Source: Chlorokybus atmophyticus (lineage: Eukaryota > Plantae > Mesostigma and Chlorokybus algae). Taken from it: DNA of 64,000 nt. The DNA lies in contig RHPI01001010.1 of NCBI GenBank assembly GCA_009103225.1, positions 1 through 64,000 on the forward strand. The letters are read 5' to 3'. Shown here piece after piece: positions 4,333-64,000 of this stretch (the first letter of the stretch is position 1; each line of letters opens with the position of its first letter). The translations under genes and the position numbers were made by a program. The notes beneath the pieces are model-generated. The model saw only the letters and a program-made list of their open reading frames with translations. It was not told the DNA's origin and did not search any database.

Positions 4333-4364
<32 letters not shown>

Positions 4365-24560: not shown

Positions 24561-24695
24561 CCTAATCAACCTCAAGTCTTGGTTGACTCAAGTGACTGCA
24601 GGTTGTAAGCCATGTGGACTTGCTTGTTGACTTGTCACAGCAAGCAAACCATGTACTTTGCAAAAGAAGTGTCTCTAAGCTGCTTGCACAAAGGC

Positions 24696-35496: not shown

Positions 35497-35893
<397 letters not shown>

Positions 35894-37625: not shown

Positions 37626-37855
<230 letters not shown>

Positions 37856-41200: not shown

Positions 41201-43309
41201 GTAACCTTTGAACAAATTGGAGAACCTGCGCTGGCAAAGTTGTACAAAGAGTGAGCTCTACAAGTCAGAAATGTGCAAATACCCTTCAGAGTGACAATGC
41301 TGCAAGCGCAATTACCGTAACCCGAGCAGCTGTTTCTGTCTTTCTTTGAAGTTTTATCCAACTTTGACCCTTTACCTTTACAGAAACTCAGCCGTCACAC
41401 ACCTGAAATGCAAACAGAGTTGGTATATCTCTCACTGCCTTCAGGGGAAGCTTTGGGACTGATCCTCATCAGGCAAACAACACATTGTCCTCTTGAAACA
41501 GTGAACTTCATTCTAGACCTCTACACACACCACCAGTAGCGCAAGGCATGCCAAACACATGTGGTGGAAACTGCCTTGTTGCCACAGGTCAGGTGAGAAG
41601 CCCCAAGGAACCATGCATGCATGCAGCTGGCTACCCAACAGACAACCATCTGCATCATTCACGCAAGCATTCTCGTCATCAAGTAGACATGGCTCTCATC
41701 CCATGCTCGAGACGCATGAAACATTGACCAACCAAGCACAGCAGGCTTCAGCACACGTCAACACACCAGCGAAGGTCAGGCCTGCGACGAAGAAATCAAC
41801 TGCAAGCCGGCGGCAATAATTGATTGCCTCACCGAGAAGATGGGTAAGTCTTGAATTCCTTCGTCGCCGTCGCCGTCGCCGTCGCCGCCGCCACTACTTA
41901 CCTGCTGGACAGCAATACCCAAGACGATCGCTTTGAACAGTTCATATATACATGGGCCGAGTCGCAACGGTAGGGAAGGGTTTGAAAACGCGATCGGGAT
42001 TCAACAAGTCGAGACCGCTTTTTTCGTATGTCATAAACGCGTCGAGCGTCACGAGTCACGACCCATGATAAAGACTTTCGTAAGCGTGGTTGAGTGTACT
42101 TTCTGTGCGGGGGTGAAGTTGGGCAGCTTGATGAGGACTTTAAGTCATCGTTTTTCGAAGAGATCAATGCGACGGAATCTGACGGCGCTCTGCCTGGATC
42201 CGGATCTATTGAGCCGTTAGAGATGCGAGGCCCGTTTCACCATTTGAAATTTGCCTGGCGGCATTTGAAATTTGCCTGGCGACAAACTGACGCACATGCC
42301 ATCTGGCAATCATACGCTGATGCAGTGGGTACATGTAGCGGCGCATAATGCGCGGCGCAATGAAGGTGTTACCGTGTTTACTGCATTACATAATGCATCT
42401 ATCCTACCATCTACCCCAACTCTTCACCAATGTGTCTAACACAATGTCATGACAAAGTGGAGCGGGTGGGAGTTACATCAGGTAGACTCTCGCAATTTGG
42501 ACAATATTTACTTTGATAGCTTCAACAACGCATGCTATATAGTAATAGCAACCCTTAAAAATAAAGATTGCATTGCTCGCATTTAACATGGCATATGCGT
42601 GTGACCCAAACACTACACCCACATGGACTTGTTCGGTCGATTACTTACTTTTGCGTGCACTCATTTGCTCTGGCGGGCATAAGCAAGTTGATGCAAATTC
42701 CCTTCAACCCTTGTCCAACAACATTATTTAACCACCTTATGTTGTTGCACAGCAGCTTCATCAAACGAGCTCATGATTGCCCGCTTTTCATATACCCACC
42801 ACGTTACAAATTTTTTAAAAACATACTAGGATGAGCATACTATACACGATAGGGTAGAGCTGCCTTATTTAGCCACTCGCCTTAAATTGGCCAATATACG
42901 GTTTTTACCAAATGTCTTGTGATCCCCTGCAGCAATGGCGGTTAAACTTATAGGTCAGGTATATACAAGTGTAAGACACACTTAAACCAAGCTTGAAGGC
43001 AAGCGGACAAGTGCGGCGGCAGATTTATACTTTTAAAGAGGTGTTAGAATTAATTGTTGGGCTGCCTCATTTCACTACCGTACTTTGGTAATTAATAGCC
43101 TCTGCATATGAATAGGGAATGGGGGTTTTCCTACATGTTCTGAAGGTAATAGAGATCTTATTTCTCAAGGTTCATAACAATTGGATGTGAATTGCAACAA
43201 TTTCCTGTCACACATTTTGCATGTATTGCGTAAGCAAGTTTGAGTGTGCCTTTGTGGTGGGAAAGACTACAAATGCCGTGGGAAAGGTGTTAATTGCTGT
43301 ACTTTGCTT

Positions 43310-43663
<354 letters not shown>

Positions 43664-43969
43664 AGGCAGGTNGACAAGACTGCAGCAGTATGGAGGTGAG
43701 GGAAGTGGTATGTAAGTGCAGCGTGTGTAAGGCAGGCAGGCAGGCAGGCAGGCAGAGTTGCACACAGTTATAGCGTTGCATTACAAAAAGGTTTGCTACT
43801 GTTAACTACCACGACGGCTGGCTATCTATGGTCGCCTCTACAAGCAGGGTGGGTGGCTTGTTTGACTGCACAATTTTGGCATCATTGCGGCATGGCTGCT
43901 CAGACCCCTGCTCGAGCAAAAAAGCAAAGAGTCTACAGAAACTACTATTAAATGTAGTACATCGTCGGC

Positions 43970-44457
43970 ATGCCTGACGTTCAAAGGGTAGTGCGCGCCA
44001 TCGGCAAAGGCTGTATAAGCATTAGCGACCCACAATCTGAAATTGGCATCCCCAGGACTACGCTCCGCCGCTACTGTGCAAATCCAATTCTGCTGGACAA
44101 GTACAGGTGAGTAACGGGTTGTGAATGCACGTGCTGATTGTGCTGATGCATATGCACAAATGAATGCGTGTGATATGCATGCAGGGGTGCTGATCATGCA
44201 ACGCTGTTTGATAAAGAGGAGGAGGAGTCACTTGCACGGTTTGTTATCAGCCGCAACAAGTGTGGAAGAGGGGTGACGTGGACCGAAGTATGTATTGAGG
44301 CTAGCAAGAGGTTAGCAGGAGATGAGCGTGCCAAGCTGTGCGCAATAGGCATACCTGGGAAGAAGTGGTGGCAAGGTTTCAAGCAGAGAAGGCGGCTCAC
44401 CTCTCGTAAGGCTGAGGCGTTGGACAAGGCCAAATGATGTGCATTGAATCGGGATGT
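43970..44457 (+). pseudogene. pogo/Tigger-like transposase, N-terminal part (psq-HTH and CENP-B-type HTH)
   Basis: GIPRTTLRRY; intron 44107-44184; LFDKEEEESLARFV..PGKKWWQGFKQRRRLTSRKAEAL..LNRDV, ending at the insertion site. Confidence 0.8.
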
Positions 44458-44639
44458 CGGCGCAAAATGTTTCCCCTGCCGGCCGACCAAACATTGGTAA
44501 CGGCCGTGCACCTGAAGATGCATAATTAGACTGTCGTGGCTCAGTCTACCTGTAATCTCAATACAGAGACCTAAGTACATTATATATACATATATATTAT
44601 ATAACTTATGGTACCTACGTACCTATTGTCAGGCCCTTC

Positions 44640-44970
44640 CCTTTACAATGCAGTCTTTAACAGTTGACTATGCCTAATTAACAAGCACCTGTCGGTTACT
44701 TAAAAGGCCTTAATAGGTGATTAGACCTAATCAATGGGAACCTGTAAGTTACACATCAGGCCTTAACATGTGACTATACATAATTAACAGGCACCCGCAA
44801 GGTACACATTAGTCAAAACCAAGGTGACTCAGCCTATGTGACAGGCACCTGCAGGTTACACACTAATCCAACGCAGGCGATTGAGCCTAATTCACAAGCA
44901 CCAACTAGGTAATTGTCGACAAGATAGGGCATTCTTCAAGCAACTGAAGGTGATTGATGCCTAACTGTCG
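44640..44970. repeat. Degenerate subterminal tandem repeat, about 53-bp unit, 5-6 copies
   Basis: Recurring GACTATGCCTAATTAACAGGCACCTGCAGGTTACAC-like unit near 44677, 44730, 44781, 44837 and 44890. Confidence 0.6.
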
Positions 44971-45265
44971 TATATGTATTTGCATAGCATGACTACACGC
45001 GACTGTCACTAACTGCCAGCATTGTTATGTGCATGTGCTATGTACAGGTACCTGAGGTGTGTACAGTATCTCTCAATTACTTGCCAAGGCTTGTAGTTCA
45101 AATATGTGACTTGAATGCCTGCAGTTCTGCTGTATATCATCGAGATGCAAGTTTTTACATGCATGAGCCTAATGACGATTGACTGAGCTGCTTTAAGATG
45201 CACAACACTAAGTCACAAGAGCCTTGCAGCTGTGTACACTACAGCTAAACGGACTACCAACTGCG

Positions 45266-45685
45266 CTACAGCTCCTGTCCATCCTCGCCTTGCACGTCAT
45301 CATGGAATAAAGCACCACGCGCTGGGGAATGTAGAGGAGACGCCGGAGCTTGCTCTTCCTCCTCCTCAAACGGTTGCGCCAACCAATGAAATGCCGCTTC
45401 TGCCTCAGCGAGCGGGTTACGAGCTGCTGTCTCTTGCGGCCGGCGCCGATTGAGATCTTTTAGGTATTTTAGACAAGATGCAGTGCGGCGTTTCACAAGG
45501 GTGAATGGCTGGAGGGCTGCGTACCGTTGCCTCATCTCCCGCTTCATTAACATGATCATGGTGTTAATCTCGCCGAGGTACTTTTCATGTGTGTTGATGC
45601 TAGCAGCTAGAAGAGGGTCTCCACCCTTTAAGATGCGCTCCACCTGCGTAGTTTGCAGGCATGTCTTAGTGGCATTGAAAGCCAC
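45266..45685 (-). CDS. Hypothetical intronless ORF
   Basis: 139-codon ORF directly downstream of the LamG-like gene on the same strand; no motif recognised. Confidence 0.35.
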   Translation of the reverse strand: MAFNATKTCLQTTQVERILKGGDPLLAASINTHEKYLGEINTMIMLMKREMRQRYAALQPFTLVKRRTASCLKYLKDLNRRRPQETAARNPLAEAEAAFHWLAQPFEEEEEQAPASPLHSPARGALFHDDVQGEDGQEL

Positions 45686-45750
45686 TATTTACTGCTGCGC
45701 GTCTGCAAGCCTGTAGTTTTGGGCTACAGCAATCCTGATATGCTAGTGAT

Positions 45751-47552
45751 TCAGTTCATAGTGCTCACCGTAAGCATTAGGTATGCGAGGTGGTTGATTG
45801 CCAACTGCCGGCGACCAGGTGTAGTGACGGCGGCCAGCCCCGCAGAGCTGAGTCTGAGTTCCAGGGTGTAGTCGGACATTCCAACCGGCAATGCCGTGGT
45901 GCTGAGCGCGCGGAAGCAGTAAGACATTACGCTAGATGGCGATGCCTGGTACACAAGAGCCTTGGGACTTGTGGGTGTGTACACCGCCAGCGAGTTGCCG
46001 ACAGTTCCGCTGAGCGCGCGCACCTTTGTCCACGTGAGGTAATTGTTGTTGCCGGACAGATTGTACCAGACGCTGCCCGATCCAGAGTAGCTGCAGAACA
46101 GTTCCGCGTCGACGCTGAACACTACGGGCCCACCCAGGGCCACGGAGGTCTCGCCAACCACGCCGCTGTAGTTGCCAGGCGCGAGGTCCTGCCCCACTGC
46201 GTACATGTAGTCGTTGCCTCCTAGCGCCAGGCCGCTGAAGGTGACTGCACCTGTGGCTGAGGATGCGCTGGCTACTACACCAGATGTCGCCCCGCCCGCC
46301 TTCACCTGACCCGTTGTGGGCGCGATCTACTGTGGCGTGGGGAACAGGATGGCGTACAACGTGTAGTCAGATGGCACGTTCGTCACGCTGTACGTCGCCG
46401 TGACAGAGCTCGCGCTGTTGACCGCAACTGTTGGGCCCATCACCACGGGCTTGGTGGAGAAGAACTGCAGCGCGCTGCCCTCGATGCCCGCGCGCGTGCC
46501 AGCGGCCTGATGGTCATCCTGGCGCGAACACCAGCTCAAAAAGGTCTCCGTCCAGGGTGTCGCTGCCGATGCCGTAGCCCACGACGGTGATCGCGCCGCT
46601 GGTGGACATGCTGGTCAGTGCGGGCGTGCTGCTGGCCTGGTGTGTCAGTGTGCCGTTGAGGTACATGCTGGAGGTGGCCTGGGAGCCAGCGGGGAGAACT
46701 TCTGTAAACACCTGCCTGGCGGCCGTGACGGTCACGCTCGAGGCATTGTTGTTGTACGCCCCGCTGTAGGTCCCTCCACCAAAGTAGTGCGTGAACTGCG
46801 CCGCGGTGTTGGTCCAGAACTCGTAGGTGGCGAAACTAGAGCCCCCCACCCCCGTGCCTCCCAGCCAGAAGGACCGGCCGAGAGCGGTGCTGTGCCTCCT
46901 CTGGCACACATACGTTGTGGCTCCCGAGTAGTTGGCCGTGGTGTACAGTGTGTTGCTTGCGGCCGTCGTTGTCAAGACGTTGGCCGTGGCCGCCGACGAG
47001 AAGGTCACCGATGGCAGAGAGTACACAGAGTCGCTAATGGCGAACGCGGGCTGCTTTGCTGGTGCTCTGGCCGATGTGGCGGTTGTTTCCAGACTGGTCG
47101 TACCGAGTGGCCACGTACCCAGCGGCAGCGCCCAGCCACGCAGAAACCTCCTGGGAACTCAGAGCGCCTTACGTGGAACTTGCGTAGAAGTCCTTGGTTG
47201 CGTTGATGGTGCCGTTGCGCAAGTTCACGACGGGCCCTGCGTACGCGCTCCTCAGCCTGCGAACGGAGTACACAGCCACCAAGCTGGTGGGTGTGTACTC
47301 CGCCGCGTTGCGCGAAGCCGCGCGATGGGCCTCCAGGGCGTCTTCACCCTGCACCCAGCGGTCGTAGAGGCTGCTGTTATCGTTATGCTGGTCTATAGCG
47401 TGCAAGACACAATAAGCTCCCTTAACGTTTGCAACGACCTGAGGATGCAGTGCAGCTAGGTTAGCCTGGGCTTGCGCGCTCGCAGGCGGTTCGGCGCGGG
47501 GCGAGGCCCTGTGCAACCTTGGGGGGGCACGGGTACCCCTTGGCGTTTGCAC
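45751..47552 (-). pseudogene. Virus/phage-like beta-rich protein with two concanavalin-A/LamG-type modules (stops and frameshifts)
   Basis: AVYSVRRLRSAYAGP..DFYA..YDQSGNNRH, YLNG, GDLFELV, and FSVDA..SYSGSGSVWYNLSGNNN; Ser/Thr/Gly/Ala-rich; no introns evident. Confidence 0.65.
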
Positions 47553-47783
47553 CTGGTAAAGCCTGGTTCATGGCGTTGGTCTGTGAAACATGGGGCGAGG
47601 GTTTGCAATTGGGTACCCATGGGTACTCTGTGTCGGTCATGACACCACTACATGTATCTGATGATTATAAAGCAATGTATTCTACCGCACGTTTGACGTG
47701 CTTTCTAGCAAACAAGGTGATGGCCCAGGACATAGCACCCACCTAAGGCCTCGAGCGCCACTCCAAGAGATGCTTGTGACACA

Positions 47784-48251
47784 ATGCTGCGTGCTGTTGC
47801 TGGTATGGCTGCTGCCTATGCGGGGGCGTTCGTGTTTGTTGCAGGGACATATCCGGTGCGACCAATGCACCTCGTCCTGCGCATACTTGTAAGCTTGGCC
47901 GGCAATGCCGTCCGTGTACCTTTCACATCAGGAGTCCGCTATCGCGCGATGATTTGCAATCAGATTGGTCACATTGTTGTAGCGCGTATTCTCATGGCTC
48001 CGATGTACCCGTATTACAAGGTCGAAGACCCAATGGTGTGCGCTCTATTGGTAATTGTGGCGTTTACGGGCATGAGCATTTTGGCTCTGAGTGTGGCAGG
48101 GACGCTGATTGTTGTTGCGCCCATACTTGCGTTGGCAACGATTGCGGCGGGTGTGTGGGTCGCTTCAAATGCATGGGGCGCCGTGCAAGCCACGCAAAGG
48201 CAAATGGCGGCGATCGTGTGTTATTTTAGTCGTAAAGTACATCGAGCGTAA
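47784..48251 (+). CDS. Small multi-pass membrane protein, intronless
   Basis: Intact ATG-to-TAA ORF of 155 aa with several hydrophobic segments. Confidence 0.5.
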   Translation: MLRAVAGMAAAYAGAFVFVAGTYPVRPMHLVLRILVSLAGNAVRVPFTSGVRYRAMICNQIGHIVVARILMAPMYPYYKVEDPMVCALLVIVAFTGMSILALSVAGTLIVVAPILALATIAAGVWVASNAWGAVQATQRQMAAIVCYFSRKVHRA

Positions 48252-48693
48252 ATTGCGGACTGATAGCTTGTAATAATCAGGACATCAACGCCGCATGGTA
48301 CCCTAACTTGATGCCTACGCGAGACCATTGAGCGCCTAAGCAAACTAGCCCAGCCAGACCGGCTGCTTACCAGCCCCTGTAATCTAGCCAGTATCCCAGA
48401 TTAATTCCCATCATGTCGATGAGCCTTATCATTGTGTACATTGCGAAAGATGTTTGTACGGCTTGCGCGCAACCGATCTTCTGCCCATCGATGACGACTT
48501 GAGCGGCATGTACAGGATTTTAAAGACCTTCGACACGACGCCCGAACGGACACAGTGGCTGAGAGACATCGCTGCCGAGGTCTGCGCGGTGCCAGACTCA
48601 ACGACGCCTTTCACAAAAGAGGCGCACGACTGGCTGTGTCGGTTGGCTGCGCAGGTCTAGGCACAGTGCCCGAGAGGCGTGCGTAAATTTGCC

Positions 48694-49660
48694 CTAATGC
48701 CGCAGAAAGCCATCCAGGCGATCTCTATTCCCATTAACACTACGATCCTGAGAGGCCTGGTTGTCTCTGCCCACAATCTCTCGGCCAAGGCCATCGCTCT
48801 CGTTGATAGGGACCAGCTCTGACAAAGCGTGTTCAAGGTCGACTCGATTGTGAAGGGCAAGAGGGCGTTTGAGCATTTGGTCACGACCGGCGTCGCCATA
48901 CGCCTTCTCTGGCTCATCGCTGAACTCAAAGGCAAAACCACCCATGAATTCTGGGAACTCCTTTGACTCGAGCATGTCGACCACTGTTTGCGTGATCACG
49001 CGGATGCACTCCTCCTGCGTGTGGTCATGGTCTTCTTCCGCACTGCACCTCCCGTACTCACCGATGCACAGGGGGACCGTGGGGCAGCACTTGAACCAGT
49101 CTCTCACCACGTTCTTGACGGTCTGCCCGTGCAGACTGGTGGGCTCCACAAAGTACATGTTGATCATGGCGAAGTAGCTGCTCACGCCTGCGGCCCGCGC
49201 CATCTTTGCGGCGTCTATCTGGGCCGCAAACCCTGGGTCTAGGACCGTGCACACCGTGACCGGGAGCACCGCCAGCCTGCCAACCAGCTGCAGGGCGGGC
49301 TCCATGCGGTCCCGGTTGTACGCGGGGTCGTGCATGTACTTGTTGGTCACTACGAAACCCGCATTGGCCGGGTGACTCTTAATCTCGTACACGATGTCCG
49401 CTATGGCGGCATCCATGTCGTGGCTGACAAAGTAGTTGCATATGGGTACTAGGGTCTTGAGGCTCAGCGCGTGGCAGCGGTCAAGGAAGCTGATGTAATT
49501 GAAGGCGTCGTTGAAAGTGTAGGTCCTCACGCAGTTGGCGTGCAGCTTGTTCCTGATTGTACCCAGGTCGTTGCGGCCCGCGAAGGTGCCCTTGCCCATG
49601 TTGATCCTGCCCCACTCTCTACCCAGGGGCAGTATATGATGTCACCGATGGCATTTTGCA
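48694..49660 (-). pseudogene. Clan-A glycoside hydrolase (GH2/GH5/GH72-like TIM barrel), intronless
   Basis: NDLGTIRNKLHANCVRTY, VVTNK (NE acid/base position changed to K), LCIGEYG nucleophile, GGFAFEFSDE; frameshifts near both ends. Confidence 0.65.
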
Positions 49661-50739
49661 AATGCTGTCCATAGAAGAACAAATCCTTACACACAGTGTC
49701 ACAGTGTCACACAGTGCTTACCTCGTTGCCAATCTTCTACTTGGTTAGGGAATGGTTGCTGACGGCCGAGGTTGCTACGTTACGGCCAAATGCGTTTGGG
49801 TTGGAGGGTCCAATTGACCCTCTGCAAGCACAACCATATGAATCATGCTGCCATCCATTAAAGATGCAACCCTCGCAGTTGGGCAAGAAGCAACGTGCAC
49901 AGTGTATCCAGAACGCATGCGGTCACTATGCCAGTCATGAAGCAAGCATCACAGTTTGAAGTTGAGCAAGAAGCAACGTGCACAGTGCATCAAGAACGCA
50001 TGCATTCTAGCTTGCCCATGCGACCGCGGTGTCATGTGAAGTTGTTATGATGGGCTGGGTTTAAGGTGAAGGTTTAAGCGCGGGGTCTTGCTGTGATTGG
50101 TTGGCCAAGAGTGGCTGCTGATGGTTGGCGACGGTTGCCTGATTGAACACTGGGGGCGATGTGGACTTGAGGCGCCGACCTCCACGACGAGGTGCACCTA
50201 AAGATGGACCACAAGGCATCTCTTTAACTGATAGTTGGGTGCCGCTTGCTTACCTAATGGTGGCGCTGCCGCATCCAACGCTACCGCCGCCAGTTTGCCC
50301 GCCCAAATGTATGAGGCGCGAAAACGAAAATGAAGCGATTTTGAACGTTTAGTGTCCCGCACTAAAGTCGCACTTGTAGTGCGTCCTTCTCTTCTATGGT
50401 TGATGGTACGACTTATGCATTCGTACCATCCATGCTTCGTACCACCAAGGGTAAAAGTGGCTTGGGCGTAACATGTATGGTACGACAGAGGCATCTCTCG
50501 TCCAACCCCAGCCATTTGCGTACAATGGCTCTGCCACACCATTCATAGTAAGACATAGGCATTGCTCGACCAGCCCTAATGAGAGTTAGCGTGCACTCAC
50601 CCAAACAGCTTCATTGATGGCCGGATGATGGCACAAAGGGGCGTCAGGTCGATAACGGGTCGAATGTCAAGCATAGTGGACTTGGGTTTGACTAAGAGGC
50701 GGAGGACCAGGAGTAGGGGGCGGCGGCGGCGGCGGCGGC

Positions 50740-53700
50740 TTGCGAGAAGTCGTAGCCGTAAGAGTTCAAGCAGCGAAGCTAGCTAATACCCGGCGCCATG
50801 TCATGGATCATGGCAGGCGTCAGCAATGGGGCTGTCCAACATGCATCACCAACATTGGACAAACCAGCAGCCAAGCCATCAAGGACCATCTTCACACATA
50901 TAGCTGCTTGGTGGCTCACTTTCTGCAACAAGAAGTGAATCAGGAGCTGCAGTTCTTGGAGCCCCTTGTAAAAACATGCGGGACCAATTGCGACTGTGGG
51001 AACAAGCACAAAGGAATGCAGAGGTACCCTCAACAATCACATGCATTTCCTTGCAAGAGCCATTGATTTTTTGGCGCAGTCCATGTGACACATGTAGCAT
51101 GGCTGCAAGCCTCCACTATTCATCCATACTCACCCCACAGTCAAGCAGACATTGCGGAAGTCAGAGCAGATGGACAGAGTTGGGTGGCGGTATGTTGTTG
51201 CCAATCTCGCTGTGCATGTTGACTGCATGCACCTCCAATGCATGCCTACTTTTGCATGCTAAGATGTGCGTGAGTGTGCAAAGTCGCGCGCGCGTGCCGA
51301 GCGCAGTAGGTTGGGTTTGAGCACAGAAGCGCGTGGCCATTCGTCGGGTAGTAAACCATTTGTGCATCAACCAGCAATGCCGCAGGCGACTGTTCGAAGC
51401 AACCATCTGATGATGGTGTGACGCAGTTAACGATTGCCATTGCAGTGTCGCAAGCATGCAGCTAACCCATATGTAATTGGTTGAAAGCACCACTGTGCAC
51501 GAGGTCCTGTTGGAGCTTATATGCAAGCCGGGATTCAATCCCATCAACTGGTCCTTCAATCCCACTTGCTAATGGGCGCGGCGGCAAAGCGGCATCAATT
51601 TAACATGCATGTTGGCCTGTTGAATCCCGACATATCCATTGCGGCAGTAGGGCATCCTGTGCCCATGGCTCACGAGCTCCATGACGAGTCTGCAATTGAG
51701 GGTGGCGGGGAGAGTGCACCCAATACCACCTTGTCAGCCCCCATGGCTGCCCATGCAGCCCACGGGCCATTGAGGTAAGTCGCTATCTTTTATGATTGTG
51801 CCTTGGTAACAATGCGTCAGGCACATGCAAGCTTATATTCATCTTTTGCAACATTGTGAGTCATCTTATCCTAGTTCCTATATACAGCCCCCCTTGCTGC
51901 ATGCACAAGTGGTCTCACCTGCCGCACCTGCTCCCCTCGCAGCCAGAGCGCATCCACCCTCCGCGGCACCAGTCCTTCATGCACTACTGTCTCCTCCACA
52001 AGCAGCACCGGTGATTGCGGGGCAACAATCCTTCTTGCCGCAACCGGCGAGACCACAGCACAATGCAACAACCGATGTAGCTTCTGGACCTACCTTACCC
52101 CACCTGCTGCAAGTTGAAGCCGGTAGTTTGCCCCAAGCTCGAGTACTTCATCAGTCACTGTGATTCTTGCCGTCGACAGTTGGACACATCATTTAAGTGT
52201 TGTATGCGCATGCAGCAGGGGTCACAACCTGCCAGCGAGTCATAAGACGAGCTGGCCGCAACCCGCGTACAACCATTAGTCATGCTAGGTGGCCAGCTCA
52301 CCTCATGGGACCCCTTCAATGCGCCAACGGATGGTAATTTATGCTTCTACCATTATGTGTTTTGCGCCAGGCCATAGCGCAGAGTGTCTTGGATGATCAC
52401 AAGCGCCCCAGCTCGAGCAAATTTTGGGCCATGCTAGACACTATGGACGACGACGGCAGGGGGGACACTCTCCGCAAAATCAACGCCCAGGCTGTCAATG
52501 CAGGCGTGGCGAGTAGTATCTTAGACTTCTGCAGAGCCACTGGTGCCGCGGGAGAGGTGGCATAGTATTACGACAAACTGCCTGCGACCATGTTGGCTAA
52601 TATCAATTGCAACATTAACATAGCCATGGCCAAGGTGCGATAGATCGTTCGGAGAAAAGATGTGTACGTGGAGCACCTGCAGATGACCATGTTTGCCAAC
52701 AAGCTGGGCTTGTTGATTGGCTGTGTGACCGTTCAGCGCGAGCATGGGGAGTGGGTGCCACGGCTCACAGCGCAGTTTGGGTTGGAATAAAGGAGCCCCC
52801 AACTCAGTGCTGGTGGTGGGAAACACTGCTCCTGATGAGCCGGAAGCACACTGTTGGCTCCTCAAGTTTGCAAGCACCGAACAATGGTCGTGGCCTATGC
52901 ATGAAGTGCCACCGGAGGTAACAGACCTGATCGAAGAGTGGCGGAATGGCGTTGCTAATACCCCGCTACCACCGGTTGCTCACCAGGGTGCTGCGCCGAA
53001 GCCTCAGGCCTCGCCTTCGTATGCTAGGCAAGAAGTAGCCGACTGCACATCCTGCCTCCCCTCAACCACAGCCACATGCTCGCAAGAACAATTCAGCACC
53101 CTCCCTTCCTGCCGCGAAGACTCACTTGCCACCGCACATTGACCATCTAAAGGCATCTCCATCAAGAAGCAGCGGTAGCTCGCCCTCTCCCTCTAAGCTT
53201 GCCACATTGATCCCAGCCTGTCTTGTTGGTAAAGAGATTGATCGAGGTGTCCTGAATGCTGCGCTGGAAGACAAAAGCTACATGCTCGACCTCATGAAGC
53301 AACATGAGATCGTGGAGAAACGGGAGGCAATGAAGAAGCGCAAGACTGTTGAGCGAGAAGATATCGCCTACCCTCCTCTGAGTGACACTGCGACGGAGAG
53401 CGCCTGCCAAGATGTGCAGGTTGACCCAACAAAAAGGATGAAGATTGTTGGAACAAGGGTCGCTGACAGGACTAAAAGTGCAAAGGTAAGGCATCGTTAC
53501 AATGTAGTTTGAAGAAGCACAGCGCCTTGAAGCCTCATTGGGGCTGATTGTGCGTTTTTAGTCGGCACAGGCGGGTTTACAGCGTAATGTGGCTGCTCAA
53601 AATCGTCCAGAGAGACAGCCGATGCGTCACGAGCTGCGTAAACTCGAAGCACCGACGCGCAGACGTTTTAAAGGGCTGACTCGTAGTGCAAAGGAGTTAA

Positions 53701-55500
53701 TCGCCCTACAATACGCCCAAGACGCGCTGCACCACCGCATGCGGCATGCTTTCAGGTGGGTGACGAAAGCATGCGATAAGTGGGAGCAAACGCGGAGAGT
53801 GCGGTCTAAACAGACCTCTGGGATTGGCCGTGGTTGGAACCTAAACACATGACATGGCCATCCGTAGTACATTGTTGCCCCTCGCCATCCTCGATATGAT
53901 GGTGTTGTTGCTGCCGCAGCAACTCGGCAATGTGCAAGAGCTATCCGCTGAGCATATACTCCAACCTGCTGCAACAGATGTACCTGTTGATGTCGACGGA
54001 TGCGGGTCGAGATGTGTGCCAGTACCTAAGCAAATATATTGGGTGGCAAGTAGAACCATTCAAGCTGTACTTGGCTTGCTTTGGCTGGCAGTGGCTGTAC
54101 GTCAAACGGCACGTCGAGCTGATTCTGTGGAAGCTCTACAAAGATAACGATGCGGGCGAGTACACGAGTGACGACAGCCATGTCGAGGGCCTAAATAAAC
54201 GCATGCTGGACGAGATCACCAAGATCAGCAGATGGTGTTGGGCGGCCTATAGGCGTCAGGTGATCAAGCAGGCAGTGGAGCGTTATGCTGCGCCATTTAG
54301 ATGGGAGTCGCTGCGCCTACAACGCGATAACAGAGTTTGGTGGCAAAGGCAGCTTGCACACTGGCATGCACCATGCGAGCTGAATTGTCGCATTGAAGAC
54401 CCCCCCTCCCCCCCCCACCCCCGGGAATGGGGAGACGCCCTGTTGCAAGCAAGCGATGTGCCATGTCTGCATCATATACCAGCAGAAGCACGTGGCAAAT
54501 AAATAAAAGAAGCTACAAGCGTGTCCCATGTGCAAGCAACCTCACCAGTTTGAGTCGCCACATCTGCTGCAAGACGCCAATGTGTCGGCAGTGATTTGGG
54601 CCCCGCCTTTATGACAATTGTGCACCGTAGTTTTGTGTTGAACACATGTGAACCGTGTAGGTACATGCATATGTTGCAGCATGGTGCATGGTGCACCCAA
54701 GATCTGCTGTCGTTAGAAGCATTGGCTGTACATGTGTATGAAGACTGCCCGGCGCATGAGTCAATGCATGGCTTGCATACCTTGCTAATCCAGAACGTGA
54801 TTGACAGCAACAAACTCGGACAGCTCTCTGGGTTCTATGGAACGACAGCGCAGTATCACTCTACGATTGTAGTATTAGGCAAGTATCCTTGTACTGTAGT
54901 ACCATTGATGAATGGAGTACCATTCATGTTAGTGTAGTACCATGCATGCTCTTGTAATACTGTCCATGGTACAGTCGTGCTTCACTTGAAGTGTGACTCA
55001 TTTAGGGTTCGTAAGCTAGCCACCCTAAATTGATGCCCATACCTTGAAGTCTCGCTCAGTTGTGGGCAGCCGTGCCGATTCACATCTTTCATAATGTCGG
55101 CGACAGCAAATAATTCCCTCGTCACCTAGGAGACCATGCTTAGTGTGCCCACAATGCAATGCGTACGTATGTGCCAATGGCCGTAGGCAGCAATCGCGAG
55201 CACACTTGACCGAATGCCAGCAAGTGCAGATGGTGTGCCACAATTTTAGTGCTGCTTGCTGGCATCACACCACACACAATGTCGACGTGTTTGGCTGCCG
55301 CCTCGGCAAAGTGCTGTGCAAAGGAACTCAAGTTTTTCCATTGCTTGCAGTGCGTGTGCGAATCGTGCTCGCGCTCATGCTTCGAGTGGCGAGGGAAACC
55401 CATGCGCTTCTTCACGTGGACAACACTGGGACATGTGATTAGTGGACAGGTGGTGGAAAATGTGGAGGTAATTCGGCAGAGTGGACAGCGACGTATCACT
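50740..55500 (+). pseudogene. Degraded multi-exon gene(s): zinc-finger-like, weak OTU-like and Cys-rich blocks
   Basis: CPTC..H.H..C near 50830; APTDGNLCFYH..LRQAIA near 52320; basic exons 53126-53850; Cys-rich block 55140-55400; many stops. Confidence 0.35.
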
Positions 55501-55559
55501 GCATGATATGTTGGCGTATGCTTATTTTATGCATGTTGAAGCTGTTGTCGCATTCATAG

Positions 55560-57340
55560 CGGTCTTCCACGGTGTGGGCGTGAGCAGTTCCACCCCCTGG
55601 CCGCTGTAGAGGGGGCAGACCATCTACCATTGAACAGCGCATTGCATCGGCTACGGAATGCAGCTAAGTTGGGATGCGAGCAACTGATCGCTGTGAGTGT
55701 CAAGGTGCATTGGCCGCTGGATGGGGAATGGTATGCGGGCGTTGCGGCATTCTCTAAGCAAGCGTCAGGTCAGCATCGCTTCTTGGCGTGCGAGATTGAG
55801 GACGCATCATTTATGCATGGTGCAATGGAAAATGGCTTTGCAGGGCAGCACTAGATAGTATCCGATGACAGTGATCGACCACAAACCATTAACTTTGAAG
55901 GGCACAACGTATTCGCATACACATCAGTTGACGGGGCACGCCGTATTTTGCGCCGGAGGGGAGAATGTCAGTAGCAAAGTAAGCTTGGGCGGCATTATTG
56001 TTAGTCTCTAGCCAGCACCACGGCCAGCTTTGACCACATACACGCTATTTGACAACAACTTAGACGCACACGCAGACCAAGGGCACTCGATCGATTCTGC
56101 GGCGGTGGCGTTGCAGGTGTCAGTCTATATCACGCATGCTTGTACGAGATCGGGATGGACGTAAGTCCCTCCTTTGAGTACCCGCTGCCCTTCATACACC
56201 GCAAGGTATGCACCGTGAGTGCAGGAGAATTAAGCGTGTAACGGGAAGGTATATCAAATTACCGCAAATTGACTATAAAAGCACCAAGTTTTTTATGGTC
56301 GAGTGGGCTGTGACATTGGTCATCGGAGCGTGACACTCGGGTTCGATTCCTGCCTTGCACACGAATTCCGCGGTCGTTGTTTCTCAATCCAGTAACATCG
56401 TAAATGGTCATAAGTGCCATCAGCGATGGGTCGCGACTTGCCTAATGGCAGTCGCGCCGGCGTTCAGTCGGCGCGGCAGAACGCGACCTGCCTGTCGCGA
56501 TGCTATCGGTGGGGCCGGCAGCGGTTTGCTATGCGCGCATTAACGGTATGGGCGTAAATTGGCCGGTCCTTGGGTGGTGGGGCCGGTGACCGACCCTAAT
56601 CAGACCCTTGGGATGATTCCCCAGCTGATGGGAGCCAGCTGCCGAGGACATCAGCGTTCTTAAGTGGGGGGGGAATGTAACGGGAAGGTACATTAAAACA
56701 CCACAAATCAACTATAAAAGCACCAAGTCTTTTATGGTCGAGTGGGCTGTGACAAAGCGAGTACGAGCTCATATGGGCCAGTCCACCATGCCAGGCCTAT
56801 TCAGATGCTATCCCGGCCTCAGCGGGCGGCACATTGCACATCTTGGACACCAGGATATGATACCACTCGTCCGACATCTGCTGCTTGCAAGCCAGGTCAA
56901 GTTTGTGATTGAGAATGTGCTAGGAGCAGCTTCCGCATTTAGACCCAATTTGTTTCTTTCTGGCATGATGTTTAGCCTATCAACCTTCCGACACCGTCTG
57001 CTTGAAATACTGCCAGTGGTAGCTACCCTATCAGCACACTGCTCCCATGCGGGCAAGGCGGTTGGACTGCTATGGCTGCACTTGTCCGCTGGCGCGAAGA
57101 AGACCATCGTGACATCAAATGCGCCGCAGCAAATGTACCCGGTCTATGGTCGTCCAAGCACGAGGGGCGACATTGCTGCATGGCAAACAATGCTAGGAGC
57201 GCTATGGATCATCATCCTCGACCGTTACCACAGCGAATGCAGTTCCTCCCGCAGTGGCGGAGTGCATAGGGCGTCTCATGCTTAGAACAATGGATATGCG
57301 CTATGACTACCCTCATGTGTCATGGAACTACAAGGCTTGA
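55560..57340 (+). pseudogene. Tudor-like domain plus phage-type C5 DNA methyltransferase, interrupted by a TRIM
   Basis: Same frame: VKVHWPLDGEWYAG (Tudor-like), then RPRALDRFCGGG (I, 56071), IGMD (II), YPLPF. After removing the TRIM the frame continues ELSEYELIWASPPCQAYS (IV). FVIENV (VI) follows a frameshift. Confidence 0.8.
56237..56754 (+). mobile_element. TRIM (miniature LTR retroelement, 518 bp)
   Basis: 79-bp LTRs TGTAAC..GTGACA at 56237-56315 and 56676-56754 (8 mismatches); 5-bp TSD AAGCG; iMet-like PBS TGGTCATCGGAGC; PPT AAGTGGGGGGGGAA. Confidence 0.92.
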
Positions 57341-57546
57341 GTGTGGTGCACTGTACTGAGGCTTAATGCCACACGGCTGACTGATTGTTGAATGTTGCAT
57401 TCAACATTTGATGAATGTGGTGACAGTTGTGCAGTGACAGCTGCCCGATATTGTACACATCCACATGCAAAAGTCTTAGCGTACGATTAGTAATGCCTAA
57501 CCAAGTAATATACTCCAAACTCAGAGTAGTGAGACAAGTACATGTG

Positions 57547-60500
57547 TCACATAGCAGTGTAGAAAACGTTCACCCAATATCTGCCCTCTTGTACACGGGC
57601 GCTGTCGTTGTCGAACATGGGGAGCAGCTGGACAATGCCTTTTACTTGCTCCAAAGTCACGACATCGAGATGTGGACCCCGACGCTTTTCCCATTTCAGA
57701 GCGATGCACTTTGTGTCGCTCGTCACATTTAGCTTCGTGTACCAGCGGACAAACACGACCTCTTTTCAAACGAGTTCGCCGCTGCCACCCCATGCGCAAA
57801 AATAGGAGCGCCTGAGCCCACCACGTCACGTTCACACCGTCCTCATCACCTTCCGACGCAAGTGTAGAGAGCCAAGGCCGCCCATAGAACATCCCAGTTG
57901 CGCGTGCCATGCTTACTTCTGATGTCATGTACACCGCTGCGCCTCCGTTCACCACGCGAACAGCACGCCACCCGTCGACCAACTACAGCTGTACCCTCCT
58001 TACCAGCTGTCCAGGGTGGCAGGCAGCTTGTCGGCGAATGGAGTCTTCAGGGCGACTTGGCGGCTTCACGCAGACGCGCTCCAGTACGGGCTGGACTCCC
58101 TCGTTGTCAGCACATCCATCCGTAGCAACTTGTCCGTCTTCTCCATTACATTACAACACTGCTGCCGCACCTGCACCATGACTGAGCATTTTGGGAGCCA
58201 CAACCATGCCATCGTCTCTTATATATCCGCACATATATCCGGACAGCTCCATGCCTTCCGGATATGCGCCTGGTAGTCCCAGTTGTTGCCACCACGCGCG
58301 CACTGTTCGATATTTTCGGCGTGCGCCTGCTCCATGCGGTTGGCGGTAAACCAATCTGGGTCCACTGCTGACAATTGCCGATCCAAAATGAGTGAGCTGA
58401 TGCATCTTCTTGATCTTCCAACCTGACTTCGGTACAGAATATGACGACAGTAGCGGATGCAACACTGCAGATTCAAAGGCAGCTAGCTCGTTGTCGGCTG
58501 TGGTCAGGATCTCTCTTGTATATTCATGCGCCTTGAGCAACCACTTGTTCCACTGGCCAAGAGATGCGGCAGCAACTGTGAAGAAATTGTTACCCTCATT
58601 GTCGAGCAACAAACCGTTTATAATCGATCGGCAGCAGCTGCAGCATCGCCACTTTCTCCACCACCTGAAAGGAGTGGTCGGACAAGAAGAAATCTACTGT
58701 GCTTATGGGAGCCTGAAAGTGTGAAACCCGTAGAGTCGCCTTGCATGCATTTGGCTTGTGCAAATCTACTTGTGAGCACGTGTCGTTGGCTTTTGTGTTC
58801 AACAAAAAAGCAACACACAAGACCTGCTTGGCCTGCAGATTGTGTCTCATGGATGGACGCATGCACTCCTTCGCAGCGTCATACACTGCTGCAAGCAGGT
58901 GGTTAATGATGCCTCCCAGCACATGCATTGCGTTAGGGGCAAGACGAGAGTATCAGTCAGTTCCCGGCACCCGCGACTGTCGCCAACCCCACAGTGCATT
59001 TTGTTGCCAAACCATTGCCCAGTTACACGGAAAGCCATTCATCTTCACAAATGCCGGTAATTTGACCATTACCTCCTCGACATGTATGTAGTGCTGCTCT
59101 TTGAAAGCCTGGGCTGTCTGGCGTGCATTCATAACACCGCTATGCAGGTCCACCCGCAGCTGTCGTATTGCTGGTGTGTAAAAAGCCTCGGTTCTTAATT
59201 ACCGGTCCTCATCCATCTCTAACAGATTTGATTTGGTGACGAGACAAATATCGCAAGGATGTCGTGTTTGGTTGCCCGACATAATGCGTGCGAGTGTGGC
59301 AATCTCGTACAACACGACAAACTCAGATGCTTCATAAACAACATCCTCCATGCACTGTTTGCCAGCAAGTCGCATCCGGTTACAACCATGCATGCTCATT
59401 ACGTGCAAGTCGTTGATGTAGTTGGCAAGCGCGGGAAACACACGACGCTCCATGCCATTCGGGTCGATGAGCTGGGAAGGTCTGCAGGGCTGCAGACCTT
59501 CCCAGCTCGCCCGCTTCACCTCCCCTAACATTACATTCAAAGCGTCATGGAAAACCTCACGTTTTTAAATTGAGAACAATCCCTTGCCATGCGCCCAAGT
59601 GGGATGCGCGGCTACGACGTGAACCACCGGCAGAAGCGCTATCATAGCAACCCCCATGTTGCTAGCATACATGTCCCAACCGTAGTTGGCAAGCGATGCC
59701 ATCAGAGGGTAGCCAGAGCGCTTGCCCACTCTGTCCAGCGTGGTGTTGTCACTGTACAGAATGGCAGGCGCCAAGTAGGTCGCTTCCCCCACCTCTCTCC
59801 TCAGATCCACCTCCACATCCTTCCACTAATCGCCGTGGAAGGATGGCCAAAGCTGTGCTTGTTACCGCAGTACTGGAGATTAAAGCCATTAGCGGCATGT
59901 GAATTGCCATACAACCGCGCGAGCCATACCTGATCCAACCAAGAGCATTAACAGGCATGCTGGTCTTAGATTAGATACTGCTTTAGATACTGCATTTCAC
60001 AGACCTTGGCCGGCATATATGTGATGCTGATGTCCAGATCCTCCGGATCTTTAGGCTTGCGCAGGTCAGCCGTCACGTAGTTCTGATACGGCAGCACACT
60101 CGCATGTGCATATGCGACATGGCTCTGATGGTTGAAGCACATGCACCGCACACCGTGAACACACCTCAGATTGAGAGAAAGCAATTGTGGTCCGGAGGTA
60201 GCTGGCCATATGCACACCGGTCTCCCACTGGAGCTCTTCACTCAGGAAGTGTGCATTTCGGATGCACTTGATGATCCGCCCCATGTTGGAGGCCGACAGA
60301 CCTTGGCCGTTGTTGCACTGCACGAATGCCACTGCAAGAGCATTCTCCGAGCCATACCACACGACGCGTGAAAATTGGACGCCCCCACTTCCATGTTGGC
60401 GTGCCACAGGTTTCTCATACACACGCACACATCAAAAACCCTTGTTCACTTCCTCCTCCTCCTGTTGCTGCTTTGCGTGTGTCTCCTCAAGGGGTTCTTC

Positions 60501-60680
60501 AGCATCAAGCATGTGCGCATCCTGGATCGAACTCCCCGGTTTAATATGATCCAAATTGTACTGTAATGAACGCTGGCCGACATATAGCTTGATTTGCTTG
60601 CACACCTTGCTGCTAACAATGTGCATGTAGACCGAGGTGCGTGTGGCGAAGCGCATGTGGCAATATAGACAAAGGACTCC
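57547..60680 (-). pseudogene. Plavaka-family transposase, copy 2 (decayed, but with native C-terminus)
   Basis: Colinear with 1323-4265 with the same intron positions. C-terminus FVRWYTKL..HLDVVTLEQVKGIVQLLP..YWVNVF. Confidence 0.85.
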
Positions 60681-61139
60681 TATAGCTCACTACTGACGTC
60701 GACACAGGTGTCGCCAATGTAACCTGCATCATCATATCCAGCTTCACGCGCCGCCGCCGCCGCCGCCGCAGCCGCCGCTACCCTTGCATGCCAGAGGCCG
60801 AAAACTTGGCCACCATTCACTGGCGTGACGGCTCTGTCGTACCATTATTATTGCACGATCGAGCCATTGCACGTCCAAGGTGGGGTGAGTTTGTATAAAT
60901 ATCCTAGTTGAATCGTTTCAATGGTACGAAAATGCCTTTGCCAAAAGGTACCATTGAAATGGTACCTTTGTACAGTGGCAATGGCAGTTTGTACCATTGA
61001 CAAGTGCTGGCAATGGCAGTCCCTGCGCATGAAAACACCATTAATGGCTCCGCCAAGCTATGCCCTTATAGGGCGGTGATGCCGAGGATATGCGGCGTTT
61101 GGTAGATCATTGGCGGCGCTGCCAGGGGCGTAGTGGGCG

Positions 61140-62012
61140 TTGTGGGCGAGGTCCGAGATGAAGCCCATGTTCGCACAGGGCGGGCAAGGTGCCGGCGGGG
61201 TGTCCTTGGTGTCAAACCCCATCATGCCTACCAAGGGCACAGCCAATGACAACAGTGACTTGGGCGATATCTTACAAGGCTCCCCCTTCGAGTGGGCAAA
61301 GGCACACCACAATACTGTCTAAGAACATCTAACCCACCAGCAGCTGTACCCATGGCGACACGATTGAAGGGACAAAACAACATTGGCATAACCAAGGTGG
61401 GTTACGATGCACTGTCAATGCCACATGCTAGGGTTCTTTTATCTTGCACATGCACAGCCTCAAGTATCTTGCACATGACATTCACTGTCAATACCACATG
61501 CACACCCTCATGCACAGCCTCCAGTGTCATGCACATGAACAGAATGACCAATCTCGCAAATGCACAGCCTATTTCTACTTGCGGGAGCTCACAAGTCGCA
61601 AAAGAGAAGCTGCGGAGTACCATAAATGGGTAATCCATGATCCAGTTTAATGTTTCCAGCGGCAATTAAACAGTATGCTTGTAAATTGCCATGTTGGTCA
61701 GAGAACCAAGAGCAGCGCGGTAGGCTGACTGTCTGCCTGGCGGAGTGCAACAAAGACAAGGTAAGCATGTGTATGCTGATGGGCTAGTCCTCTGGCAGCA
61801 CGCCACTCTTATAGCATTACCAAATGCAGGTGGTCAGCTTTAAAGCGACCATCAAGCGCATGCGCGTGCACGACGAGGTGCCGACATTCAAGCTGAAGGA
61901 CAAAGTAGCCGCTGTATTGTCAGCGAGCGAGGCAGCATATGAAGATGACTCCGATGTTGAAGCAGAAGACTTGTCGGAGGAGGAACATGAGGAGGGGGTT
62001 GAGGAGTTTTGA
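61140..62012 (+). pseudogene. Accessory acidic-tail gene, copy 2
   Basis: Homologous to 4763-5636. Confidence 0.4.
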
Positions 62013-62552
62013 GGCAGGCACCACGGGTCGACAAGCTGCGCATGAGTGCGCCAACTAGACTCAATGTTGTAGGTAGTTTTATGCGCAAGTCGGCTGCTCA
62101 GTCGCAAGTGGACATACTCTCACCATTGCCGGTACGTTGCATTGTGGGCTTATAGTTACGTGACCAAACAATTAGTCGCAGGTTTGTGCAAGCTGCATGG
62201 CATGTTGATGTTGGCTTACGGCAAGTCTTATTAACTTTTGTTAAACGGTAAGGGTCATGTATTAACAGCAGTGTAACAGTAAGAAAACTGCCGGCTATTG
62301 CTGTCAGCTATCCGCGACTACCAGTTAACGGCGGTCTGTGCACATTGAGCAAAGGGTAATTGGTTGACAGCTCTCGGCCGGTCAGTGCCACTGACTACCA
62401 CTTTCAGCCCGCGGCCGTCTGCGTTAGTCCACATAAGCCAACGGCAAACCCAACAAAAGTAACATTTTTGGCACCGGCAGGCAGGCTCAGGGAGGCTCAG
62501 GCACCCGTCAGTCCCTCAGTCCTTAATCAGTCACCATGTTAAATTTGAGACG

Positions 62553-62921
62553 GTTATTTACCATTACTTCGACCTGTTGGCAAAAGTGGTGAAAGAGTTG
62601 AAAGTAGTCAAGAGCGCATCCTTTCTGCTGACGAGGTTGAAGTTCAACCAGATACCACCATGCAAAGAGTCATATATGAGAGGTAAGTGTGTTAGCTGAG
62701 TTGCAATACAGTGTTGCACTTTGCAGAGTTCACAGTGCTGTACACTAACTGTATGCATATTATGCAGTGGTGCACGCTGGGCTCAAGCAGCAACAACAGG
62801 AAGCCATGAGCACTTTACCATTATGGCAGCAGTGTCGGGAGCTGGTTACACCTTCCCTCCCTTGATTATCGTGAAGGGCAAGCGCATGACACAAGACAAC
62901 AAAGAGGGAGAAAGCATCTGA
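62553..62921 (+). pseudogene. pogo-like transposase, continuation into the DDE domain
   Basis: IYHYFDLL..ERILSADE..; intron; GSHEHFTIMAAVSGAGYTFPPLIIVKGK; truncated afterwards. Confidence 0.8.
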
Positions 62922-64000
62922 GTCAGTGTTTGCACTGCAAGAAAATGCGTGGATGATTACAATGATGTCAGCCAGCGCGACTACCCGTGCGACTACTTAC
63001 GTATGTAAATGATCTATGCAGCGTGTTTTACTGTAGAATCTTACAGACGCCGTGCCATGGTTGATCAATGTCGATACACCATTCCTACATAGGAAGCACA
63101 TGCAACTCGCGCCATCCATTTCGTCCTGCACGCGAGTCGGCACGGCGACTCAAGTCGCGTCAGCTGCAGTTACACGCGTGCGTAACTTGTATTGTGATTT
63201 GCTACGGGCGACGCTGCTTGCGTCACTCGAAGTTACGCAAGACTTTCGATCCAAGGGAAAATCCGCTCCGGCGGTGACCGAAGGGCACCGGCGGGTGCGT
63301 TGGAAAGCTCTTGCCGCGACCTTTCCAACGATACATAAATATCCACATCGGATTACCATGTAAAAAAGCCCGATTACGGCCGGTAAGTACTCGTTCTTAG
63401 CGTGTCAAAGTTGCATGTGAGAGTGCACAATGCAAAGTGGCAGACGTGTAGAGCCTATCACATAAATGTACACGGCCCTGTGGGCAGGTATGATGACTGT
63501 GAAAATTGTTTGAGGGTCATGCATGTTAAGGTAGAGGTAGAAGTACCACATAGCCTGGCGATGATAAAGGTGGTGCGTTGTTGATGATTGCACGCTGCCA
63601 TTGTCGTGACTCTGACGGTGAATATGCACGCCATGCTAGCATGAGTAGCTGCCTACCCAATGCACACATGCGTGCAAAGCACACTTATGATCAATGCATT
63701 GGTCTTCCATACGTGTACACGTAACATGCATCTGTATCATTAGAATGCCTACATAAACAACCACCCAACTAACATGACTGTAACTTGGGTTGATGGGTTC
63801 GATATGAGTACACGTGCACACAATGTACACGATTCCCTTCTTCATTTGATGTACACAACACACCAAGCTCATCTCACGTGCGTAGCCTGCAGCCTACGAA
63901 CAGCCGTTATTTAACTATGTGCGTGTTGTTCTTGGCCTTTATGTTTAAGGCCCCTTTGGCCATTGGTTTTTTGTAATGTGTACATACAATGCGCGTGGCA

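Follow-up and report, generated by a model that had tools for sequence, protein, structure and literature searches.

Results

Edges of an 18-kb Block

The first 64,000 nucleotides of contig RHPI01001010.1 of the alga Chlorokybus atmophyticus (assembly GCA_009103225.1), referred to here as the window, contain an 18-kb block that carries the remains of a Plavaka transposase and of a small C5 DNA methyltransferase, and that is set into what is plausibly a pogo-like relic. The window is a draft scaffold with eight gaps (N at 463, 1322, 8681, 20182–20196, 32100–32614, 35894, 37721, and 43672). There is no N from 43673 to 64000, so that the block and both of its flanks lie in one contig. The part of the block with the two genes (its right arm, 6.5 kb) recurs in large part near the start of the window, and the following features define the block and its ends:

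44458–62552: inserted block of 18,095 bp (decayed DNA transposon of Plavaka type, or the unit last inserted here), with edges set by terminal motifs, a GT duplication and the stop of homology with the sister copy at 6189/62552
44456–44457: GT, left copy of the target duplication
62553–62554: GT, right copy of the target duplication
44458–44506 (+): left terminus CGGCGCAAAATG, with two CGGCCG hexamers in 50 nt
44705–44809: subterminal tandem repeat, two copies of a 53-nt unit
62153–62552 (−): right terminal region with two CGGCCG hexamers, of which about 390 nt recur at the end at 6189 and about 120 nt at the end at 7280
464–6189: sister copy of the right arm, with the same right end (methyltransferase C-terminal part at 471–896, +; transposase at about 926–5052, −)
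7020–7280: third, solitary right-end fragment, ending in ...TTTACGACA

The block opens with CGGCGCAAAATG at 44458 and closes with ...AAATTTGAGACG at 62552, and the dinucleotide GT lies directly outside both edges, as a 2-bp target duplication at the one insertion with both ends in the window (n = 1; 1/16 by chance). Its left end matches the reverse complement of its right end at 8 of 12 bases, with a binomial chance of about 0.003 for eight or more matches, and 9 of 12 bases match when the end at 6189 is used instead. The right edge is set independently by self-comparison, in which the homology between 1324–6189 and 57744–62552 ends precisely at 6189 and 62552, and the same right end is found, degraded, at 7280. 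The termini read CGG...ACG, the fragment at 7280 ends in ...ACA, and they resemble the termini of PlavakaA elements only if CpG/TpG changes are allowed.

The palindromic hexamer CGGCCG occurs 19 times in the 64-kb window, and nine of these occurrences fall no more than 290 nt from one of the four ends. Two lie within 50 nt of the left end, against 0.015 expected, and this cluster provides an independent sign that position 44458 is an end of the same family. Fifteen of the 19 hexamers are in sequence derived from Plavaka elements, a fraction of about 38% of the window, and the GC-rich region at 46–47 kb may explain part of their distribution. The ratio of observed to expected CpG does not distinguish the block from its surroundings, and a 27-nt pattern of the right end found no match in Joint Genome Institute (JGI) metagenome contigs.

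A prediction made earlier from the letters of the sequence (the original prediction) had proposed a block of exactly this extent, with short imperfect inverted repeats at its ends and recurrence of its right end at 6189 and 7280. Each of these points is borne out by the self-comparison, with its stop of homology, and by the terminal motifs and the GT duplication, and the 2-bp duplications it advised looking for are present at 44458–62552, but at that single insertion only.

Pogo-like Flanks

Outside 44458 and 62552 lie two flanks that are read on the same strand:

43958–44457 (+): left flank, relic of a pogo/Tc5-like DNA-binding region, itself a pseudogene, with HTH_psq and HTH_Tnp_Tc5 below the Pfam threshold
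62553–63009 (+): right flank, which carries on the frame of the left flank, with DDE-like motifs by eye and no Pfam support

The left-flank translation contains a helix-turn-helix region with sub-threshold Pfam matches to HTH_psq (E = 0.03) and HTH_Tnp_Tc5 (E = 0.0055), which follow each other in the order expected of a pogo/Tc5 transposase. Read separately, the left frame breaks off after two bases of a codon, GT, and the right open frame begins with GTT; if one GT is the duplication, both flanks are therefore in one phase. Stops and frame changes also interrupt the relic itself, and no inverted repeats belonging to a pogo element were found inside the window. On this sequence evidence the block is plausibly flanked by the two halves of one pogo gene. 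Of the split pogo gene rejoining in frame that had been predicted, the continuity of frame across the junction holds, but the pogo identity is sub-threshold on the left and lacks a DDE_1 match on the right. A long (TG)n microsatellite with CG interruptions occupies 43211–43770, just left of the relic.

A Plavaka Transposase Pseudogene and Its Sister Copy

57334–61427 (−): Plavaka transposase pseudogene, outer bounds; pieces upstream of the core, in common with the sister copy, reach about 61427

The transposase core homologous to Plavaka proteins spans 57613–59947. Full-length Plavaka relatives align by tblastn to 59834–57613 in the block and to 3488–1325 in the sister copy, with E-values down to 2e-17 on the copy in the block, and the sister-copy piece 2892–3512 (−) matches the Pfam family PF18759 with E = 4.5e-23 (82.4 bits; cut-off 26.3). 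Among 1.84 billion representative proteins, a scan found 333 relatives, of which the nearest (70% identity) is encoded on a 552-bp metagenome contig and the remainder do not exceed 49%; the named relatives, from a liverwort, Closterium and Diversispora (Glomeromycota), reach at most 41%. A C-x-x-C motif is readable in the sister copy, and an H-x3-H motif with a downstream E-x2-H aligns with relatives in pairwise alignments, as distinct from a curated family alignment. Scattered inverted repeats hinted at another transposase gene, in inverted orientation, at 50–56 kb; this was rejected on tblastx, which returned GGC-repeat matches only.

Self-comparison identifies 465–995 and 1324–6189 as the second copy of 56866–57400 and 57744–62552, with 88% identity by blastn and 90.8% over aligned columns. 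Three contigs, which meet at N 463 and N 1322, make up this sister copy, and the segment 1003–1321 is a 94% duplicate of 2705–3023; chimerism or collapse of the sister copy is possible. Between the two copies there are 437 substitutions and 28 indels, and 24 of these indels have a length not divisible by three. The ratio of nonsynonymous to synonymous substitution rates (dN/dS) between them lies at 0.6–0.8 for transposase and methyltransferase alike, indicating near-neutral drift of both copies. Compared with the open pieces of the sister copy, the transposase core of the block shows at least six frame changes and at least nine in-frame stops; the sister transposase, cut by assembly gaps, contains a minimum of one stop and one frame change, if introns do not account for them.

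A Small Phage-Type C5 Methyltransferase

56074–57301 (+): small C5 DNA methyltransferase pseudogene of a family of about 220 aa, with motifs I, IV, and VI and phage homologues

The methyltransferase gene is convergent with the transposase gene, about 30 bp from its 3′ end. The copy in the block retains motifs I (FCGGGG), IV (PPCQ), and VI (ENV), motif X (NAVPP) is preserved in the sister copy, and all four are found in order across the two copies together. Searched by tblastn against phage genomes, the methyltransferase piece matched 249 records, mostly from Mycobacterium and Gordonia phages and annotated as DNA methyltransferase, at 36–40% identity over more than 80% of the piece and with E-values down to 8e-17. 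The N-terminal motif I region of the phage proteins also maps onto the block by tblastn, and matches extend to 11 actinobacterial plasmids (10 from Streptomyces, one from Embleya). The phage homologues are 217–220 aa long, and one of 220 aa passes the PF00145 DNA_methylase threshold (24.5 vs 22 bits). The methyltransferase piece also matches PHROG 363, "DNA methyltransferase", with E = 0.002. The methyltransferase pieces of the window themselves are below Pfam detection and were missed by NCBIfam, PDB and a word-indexed protein search; given the 249 records obtained by tblastn on phage genomes, the blank word-indexed search is a false negative.

The same position in both copies, convergent with the transposase and about 30 bp from it, places the methyltransferase in their common ancestor. 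Because its only detectable relatives are actinobacteriophage and Streptomyces plasmid enzymes, sequence comparison points to a bacterial or phage origin, with capture of the gene by the transposon lineage.

In the block, one nested insertion and at least two frame changes disrupt the methyltransferase gene. The insertion is a miniature long terminal repeat (LTR)-type element of about 0.5 kb, framed by 79-nt terminal direct repeats (TG...CA, 90% identity) and by a 5-bp target duplication. A purine tract precedes its 3′ repeat, and its 5′ repeat is followed by a tRNA-like stretch, in which ARAGORN found no tRNA. With both transposase and methyltransferase reduced to pseudogenes, the copy in the block is dead.

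The original prediction had named both genes. The C5 methyltransferase beside the transposase is present, as a pseudogene in the block, and the assignment of the transposase to Plavaka stands on tblastn and on PF18759, the profile it had recommended, which scores above the gathering threshold in the sister-copy piece; the predicted spliced gene is, however, a broken pseudogene on the minus strand.

Left Arm

The left arm of the block (44458–56073, 11.6 kb) occurs once in the window, and no domain is recognizable in it. It contains the following:

45269–47567 (−): four pieces open in different frames, of 140, 191, 214, and 132 aa, rich in Ser/Thr/Gly/Ala, with G+C content at third codon positions of 0.54–0.79 and no relatives found
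48694–49599 (−): intact 301-aa open reading frame (ORF), an orphan whose GC by codon position (0.59/0.39/0.75) gives a strong coding signature
50692–55851 (+): run of short open pieces with a weak-to-moderate coding signature and no domain found
55945–55955 (−): left terminal 11-mer (CGGCGCAAAAT) in inverted orientation, 118 bp before the start of the methyltransferase gene

The pieces at 50692–55851 may represent one decayed or spliced accessory gene. No domain was found in the left-arm open pieces with Pfam (44 pieces), PHROGs (eight) or NCBIfam (five), some pieces having been searched in more than one library, and no relatives of left-arm ORFs were found in PDB, in phage genomes (tblastn), in IMG/VR or in the protein collection; the word-indexed protein search with the 301-aa ORF returned nothing. 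An AlphaFold2 model of this ORF computed from the single sequence had a mean predicted local distance difference test score (pLDDT) of 34 and was unusable. The last open piece before the methyltransferase, 55540–55851 (+), has a weak PDB match (E = 0.036) to 7de9_A, a 66-residue chain labelled "Transcriptional regulator" that we take to be a plant Tudor domain, an unconfirmed lead only. About 5 kb of the block had been predicted to consist of virus-like genes. The composition is coding-like, but no viral relatives emerged in any search, and because no left-arm ORF has a relative in the collections searched, a viral cargo is unsupported apart from the methyltransferase, the only virus-like gene of the block.

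An inverted 10-mer of the left end (CGGCGCAAAA[T]) is also present at 27893–27902, in an unrelated context, with neither a CGGCCG cluster nor similarity to the end regions.

Neighborhood in the Window

A Gypsy LTR retrotransposon occupies 9741–21085 (+), with LTRs at 9741–10346 and 20488–21085 that are 96.5% identical. Its pol ORF encodes a Dnmt3-like domain (PF00145, E = 8.9e-10) upstream of RVT_1, RNase H, and Integrase_H2C2, together with a PHD finger, and the best PDB matches of the Dnmt3-like domain are DNMT3A/3B/3C. This is the same architecture as that of KnitGypsy-Dnmt3 of Klebsormidium nitens (PMC5890265), and by itself hints at a charophyte-like host. The sole database relative of the element in a protein search at E ≤ 1e-20 is the metagenomic protein P0174, with the domains rve, DNA_methylase, and Integrase_H2C2. 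A fragment of a different Gypsy integrase (Integrase_H2C2, 6401–7084, −) lies between the Plavaka right ends at 6189 and 7280, which share one orientation, an arrangement that suggests nested insertions in a transposon-rich region. The window further contains a tandem array at 24530–25433 (five to six copies of a 151-nt unit, about 96% identity) and (CT)n/(GA)n arrays at 35499–35680 and 37722–37853, which form perfect 132-nt inverted arms 2 kb apart and each adjoin an assembly gap.

Discussion

One Large Element or a Composite

The block is best read as an old, dead copy of a large PlavakaA-like cut-and-paste transposon that inserted as one 18-kb unit into a pogo-like relic, a reading to which we assign a probability of roughly 0.6. 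The outer ends have not only the terminal motif and the hexamer clusters but also the 2-bp duplication and the in-phase junction, and no LTR or inverted-repeat pair of a large nested element was found inside the block. A number of observations weigh against this reading. The 2-bp duplication is known from one insertion only, and the left and right subterminal regions have nothing in common beyond 9–12 terminal bases and the hexamer motif. The termini (CGG...ACG) are no exact match to those published for PlavakaA (TGT..ACA) or PlavakaB (CATCA..TGATG), and on the side of the host sequence the pogo identity of the right flank found no confirmation, with no DDE_1 match in any right-flank piece even at E ≤ 10 in Pfam. 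Furthermore, only the right 5.7 kb of the block is repeated in the window; the left arm, lacking a second copy, a transposon domain and relatives, is assigned to the element by its position alone. The methyltransferase dN/dS of 0.72 gives no sign of selection, and none of 80 metagenomic loci with distant Plavaka transposases carries relatives of the methyltransferase or of the other ORFs. Lastly, the inverted 11-mer at 55945–55955 would be in keeping with a composite origin.

Such a composite is an unlikely alternative. The real element would be the arm of about 6.6 kb with methyltransferase and transposase, and 44458–55955 (11.5 kb) would be a different but related element, non-autonomous, or else foreign DNA, in either case with inverted 11-mers of its own at the ends. 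The two parts would have come together by nesting, or through each contributing one of its outer ends, before the whole was inserted or fixed. This account draws on the fact that the window repeats the right arm only, on the absence of a transposon domain from the left-arm open pieces searched, and on the exact inversion of the 11-mer of position 44458 118 bp before the methyltransferase, for which the chance within the block is about 0.004; the miniature LTR-type element in the methyltransferase gene demonstrates that secondary insertion into the block does happen. However, the bases flanking 44458–55955 are GT and GA, and hence no 2-bp duplication, the left edge of the right arm has no plus-oriented terminus-like sequence, and next to 55955 there is neither a CGGCCG cluster nor similarity to the known end regions. 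Both the duplication and the in-frame junction are instead features of the outer ends, and the occurrence of the 10-mer in an unrelated context at 27893–27902 makes chance a possible source of the internal copy. The 11-mer at 55945–55955 may thus be a chance match, a relic end or an alternative end.

A different doubt concerns the methyltransferase, which could be a passive passenger, or have been inserted later, and play no part in the biology of the element, itself an ordinary Plavaka that has accumulated junk. This is rather improbable, if less so than a composite. The near-neutral dN/dS of the gene, the same as that of the transposase, its broken state in the block and its absence from all 80 metagenomic Plavaka loci speak for a passenger, but the gene is present in both copies at the same convergent position about 30 bp from the transposase, and all its catalytic motifs are recognizable across the two. 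That all or part of the 18 kb was misjoined in a repeat-rich draft scaffold is, in turn, very improbable. The scaffold has eight gaps and the sister copy is visibly pieced (N 463, N 1322, duplicated 1003–1321), but the sequence from 43673 to 64000 is free of N, and a misjoin would not yield matching terminal motifs, a 2-bp duplication and continuity of frame at both junctions. Of the giant mobile unit of the original prediction, a Plavaka-type insertion with exact edges can hence be retained, but only its right 5.7 kb is seen twice, the copy is dead and the left 11.6 kb is without a second copy. For these reasons, the copy being dead and the unity of the 18 kb unproven, the value of the locus is that of a pointer to a family, for collection across the genome.

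Proposed Mechanism

Under the reading of the block as a single PlavakaA-like element, the transposon would have inserted into the pogo-like relic and duplicated 2 bp (GT). Its transposase would have bound the terminal repeats and the subterminal CGGCCG motifs, made a staggered cut of 2 nt and mobilized the entire 18 kb, with the left 11.6 kb and its orphan ORFs, including the intact 301-aa ORF, presumably traveling as cargo or accessory sequence. By analogy with retrotransposon-borne DNA methyltransferases (DNMTs), for which this has been shown, the methyltransferase may have acted on nuclear DNA as a transposon-borne writer of 5-methylcytosine (5mC). After insertion, the copy decayed through stops, frame changes and the nested miniature LTR-type insertion. 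A more speculative extension, which we regard as improbable, is a self-marking transposon whose phage-derived methyltransferase recognizes the palindromic CGGCCG hexamers under its own ends, so that methylation tunes transposase binding or imitates or pre-empts host silencing, and whose left-arm ORFs form a conserved accessory cassette. Were it true, this genome would, with the neighboring Gypsy-Dnmt3, contain two unrelated transposon classes that independently took up 5mC writers. The adjoining retrotransposon, with a Dnmt3-like domain of its own, would make a natural pair with the block for comparing two strategies in one methylome.

Comparison With Known Systems

Transposon-borne DNA modifiers are a growing theme, which includes TET/JBP enzymes in DNA transposons of fungi, cassettes of N6-methylase/SET and 2-oxoglutarate (2OG) oxygenase genes in the giant Plavaka of red algae, and Dnmt3 in the retrotransposons of dinoflagellates and Klebsormidium. 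The original prediction had known of no description of the architecture of the block. Giant Plavaka elements with DNA- or chromatin-modifying accessory genes have in fact been published for red algae (10.1101/2025.02.11.637652), as have Plavaka giant repeats for Amoebidium (10.1101/2024.01.08.574619) and TET/JBP-carrying Plavaka elements with 2-bp duplications for fungi (PMC12730594), but the phage-type C5 methyltransferase is new: open-access full text yielded no account of a separate enzyme of this type in a Plavaka or in any other cut-and-paste transposon of a cellular eukaryote.

PlavakaA elements generate 2-bp duplications and have TGT..ACA termini, PlavakaB elements generate duplications of 2–3 bp and have CATCA..TGATG termini, and some PlavakaB families carry TET/JBP genes (Kojima 2025, PMC12730594). 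The block agrees with these fungal elements in PF18759, in the C(2)C and H(3-4)H motifs, in the 2-bp duplication and in the presence of a DNA-modification accessory gene, found in some of their families, and differs from them in its CGG...ACG termini, in a transposase at most 41% identical to named relatives, in a host other than a fungus, and in an accessory gene for a 5mC writer, not a TET/JBP oxidase (Iyer et al., 2014; PMC12730594).

Closer in size are the giant Plavaka elements of the red algae Bostrychia and Chondrus, which measure 17.4–19.1 kb, carry three accessory genes and fill a third of the Bostrychia genome; their cassette consists of PAG1 (function unknown), PAG2 (N6-adenine methylase PF01555 and SET) and PAG3 (ParB and 2OG oxygenase, with tandem inverted repeats) (10.1101/2025.02.11.637652). 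The block resembles them in size class, in the combination of a transposase with several accessory genes, among them a DNA methylase, and in that most of their copies are degenerate, whereas its own methylase is a small phage-type C5 enzyme. Compared by domain description, the PAG cassette has no counterpart in Pfam signals for PF01555, SET or ParB among the 44 left-arm open pieces, and the block contains no tandem inverted-repeat array like that beside PAG3. The Plavaka giant repeats of Amoebidium have intron-poor genes, reach 50 kb, form tandem clusters and are rich in tyrosine recombinases (10.1101/2024.01.08.574619). They share with the block large tracts of intron-poor genes with few database relatives, a Plavaka transposase at the flank and a genome that uses 5mC, whereas their 50-kb size, tandem clustering and tyrosine recombinases are not seen in it.

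With respect to the methyltransferase, Mariner-1_OLpv, a small Tc1/mariner element in a giant virus of algae, encodes a C5 methylase of 344 aa and an EcoRII-like endonuclease (Bao and Jurka 2013, PMC3627910). It is likewise a DDE cut-and-paste transposon with the C5 methylase as a separate ORF, but it lies in a virus genome, and no endonuclease partner was recognized in the block. The retrotransposons SymbioLINE-Dnmt, SymbioDIRS-Dnmt3, and KnitGypsy-Dnmt3 (PMC5890265) are, like the block, mobile elements with a C5 methyltransferase of their own; theirs, however, is a eukaryotic-type DNMT fused into a polyprotein, whereas the block is a DNA transposon with a separate, small gene of bacterial/phage type. 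The methyltransferases of actinobacteriophages and Streptomyces plasmids, such as Gordonia phage Kamaru gp76 and Yakult gp45, match that gene at 36–40% identity over the C-terminal 130 residues and in length (about 220 aa), motif order and the Pfam DNA_methylase family, with the difference that they are prokaryotic or viral genes and that of the block is a pseudogene in a eukaryotic transposon. A separate C5 methyltransferase of bacterial or phage type on a cut-and-paste transposon of a cellular eukaryote would add a route by which 5mC writers enter eukaryotic genomes, in this case from prokaryotic viruses.

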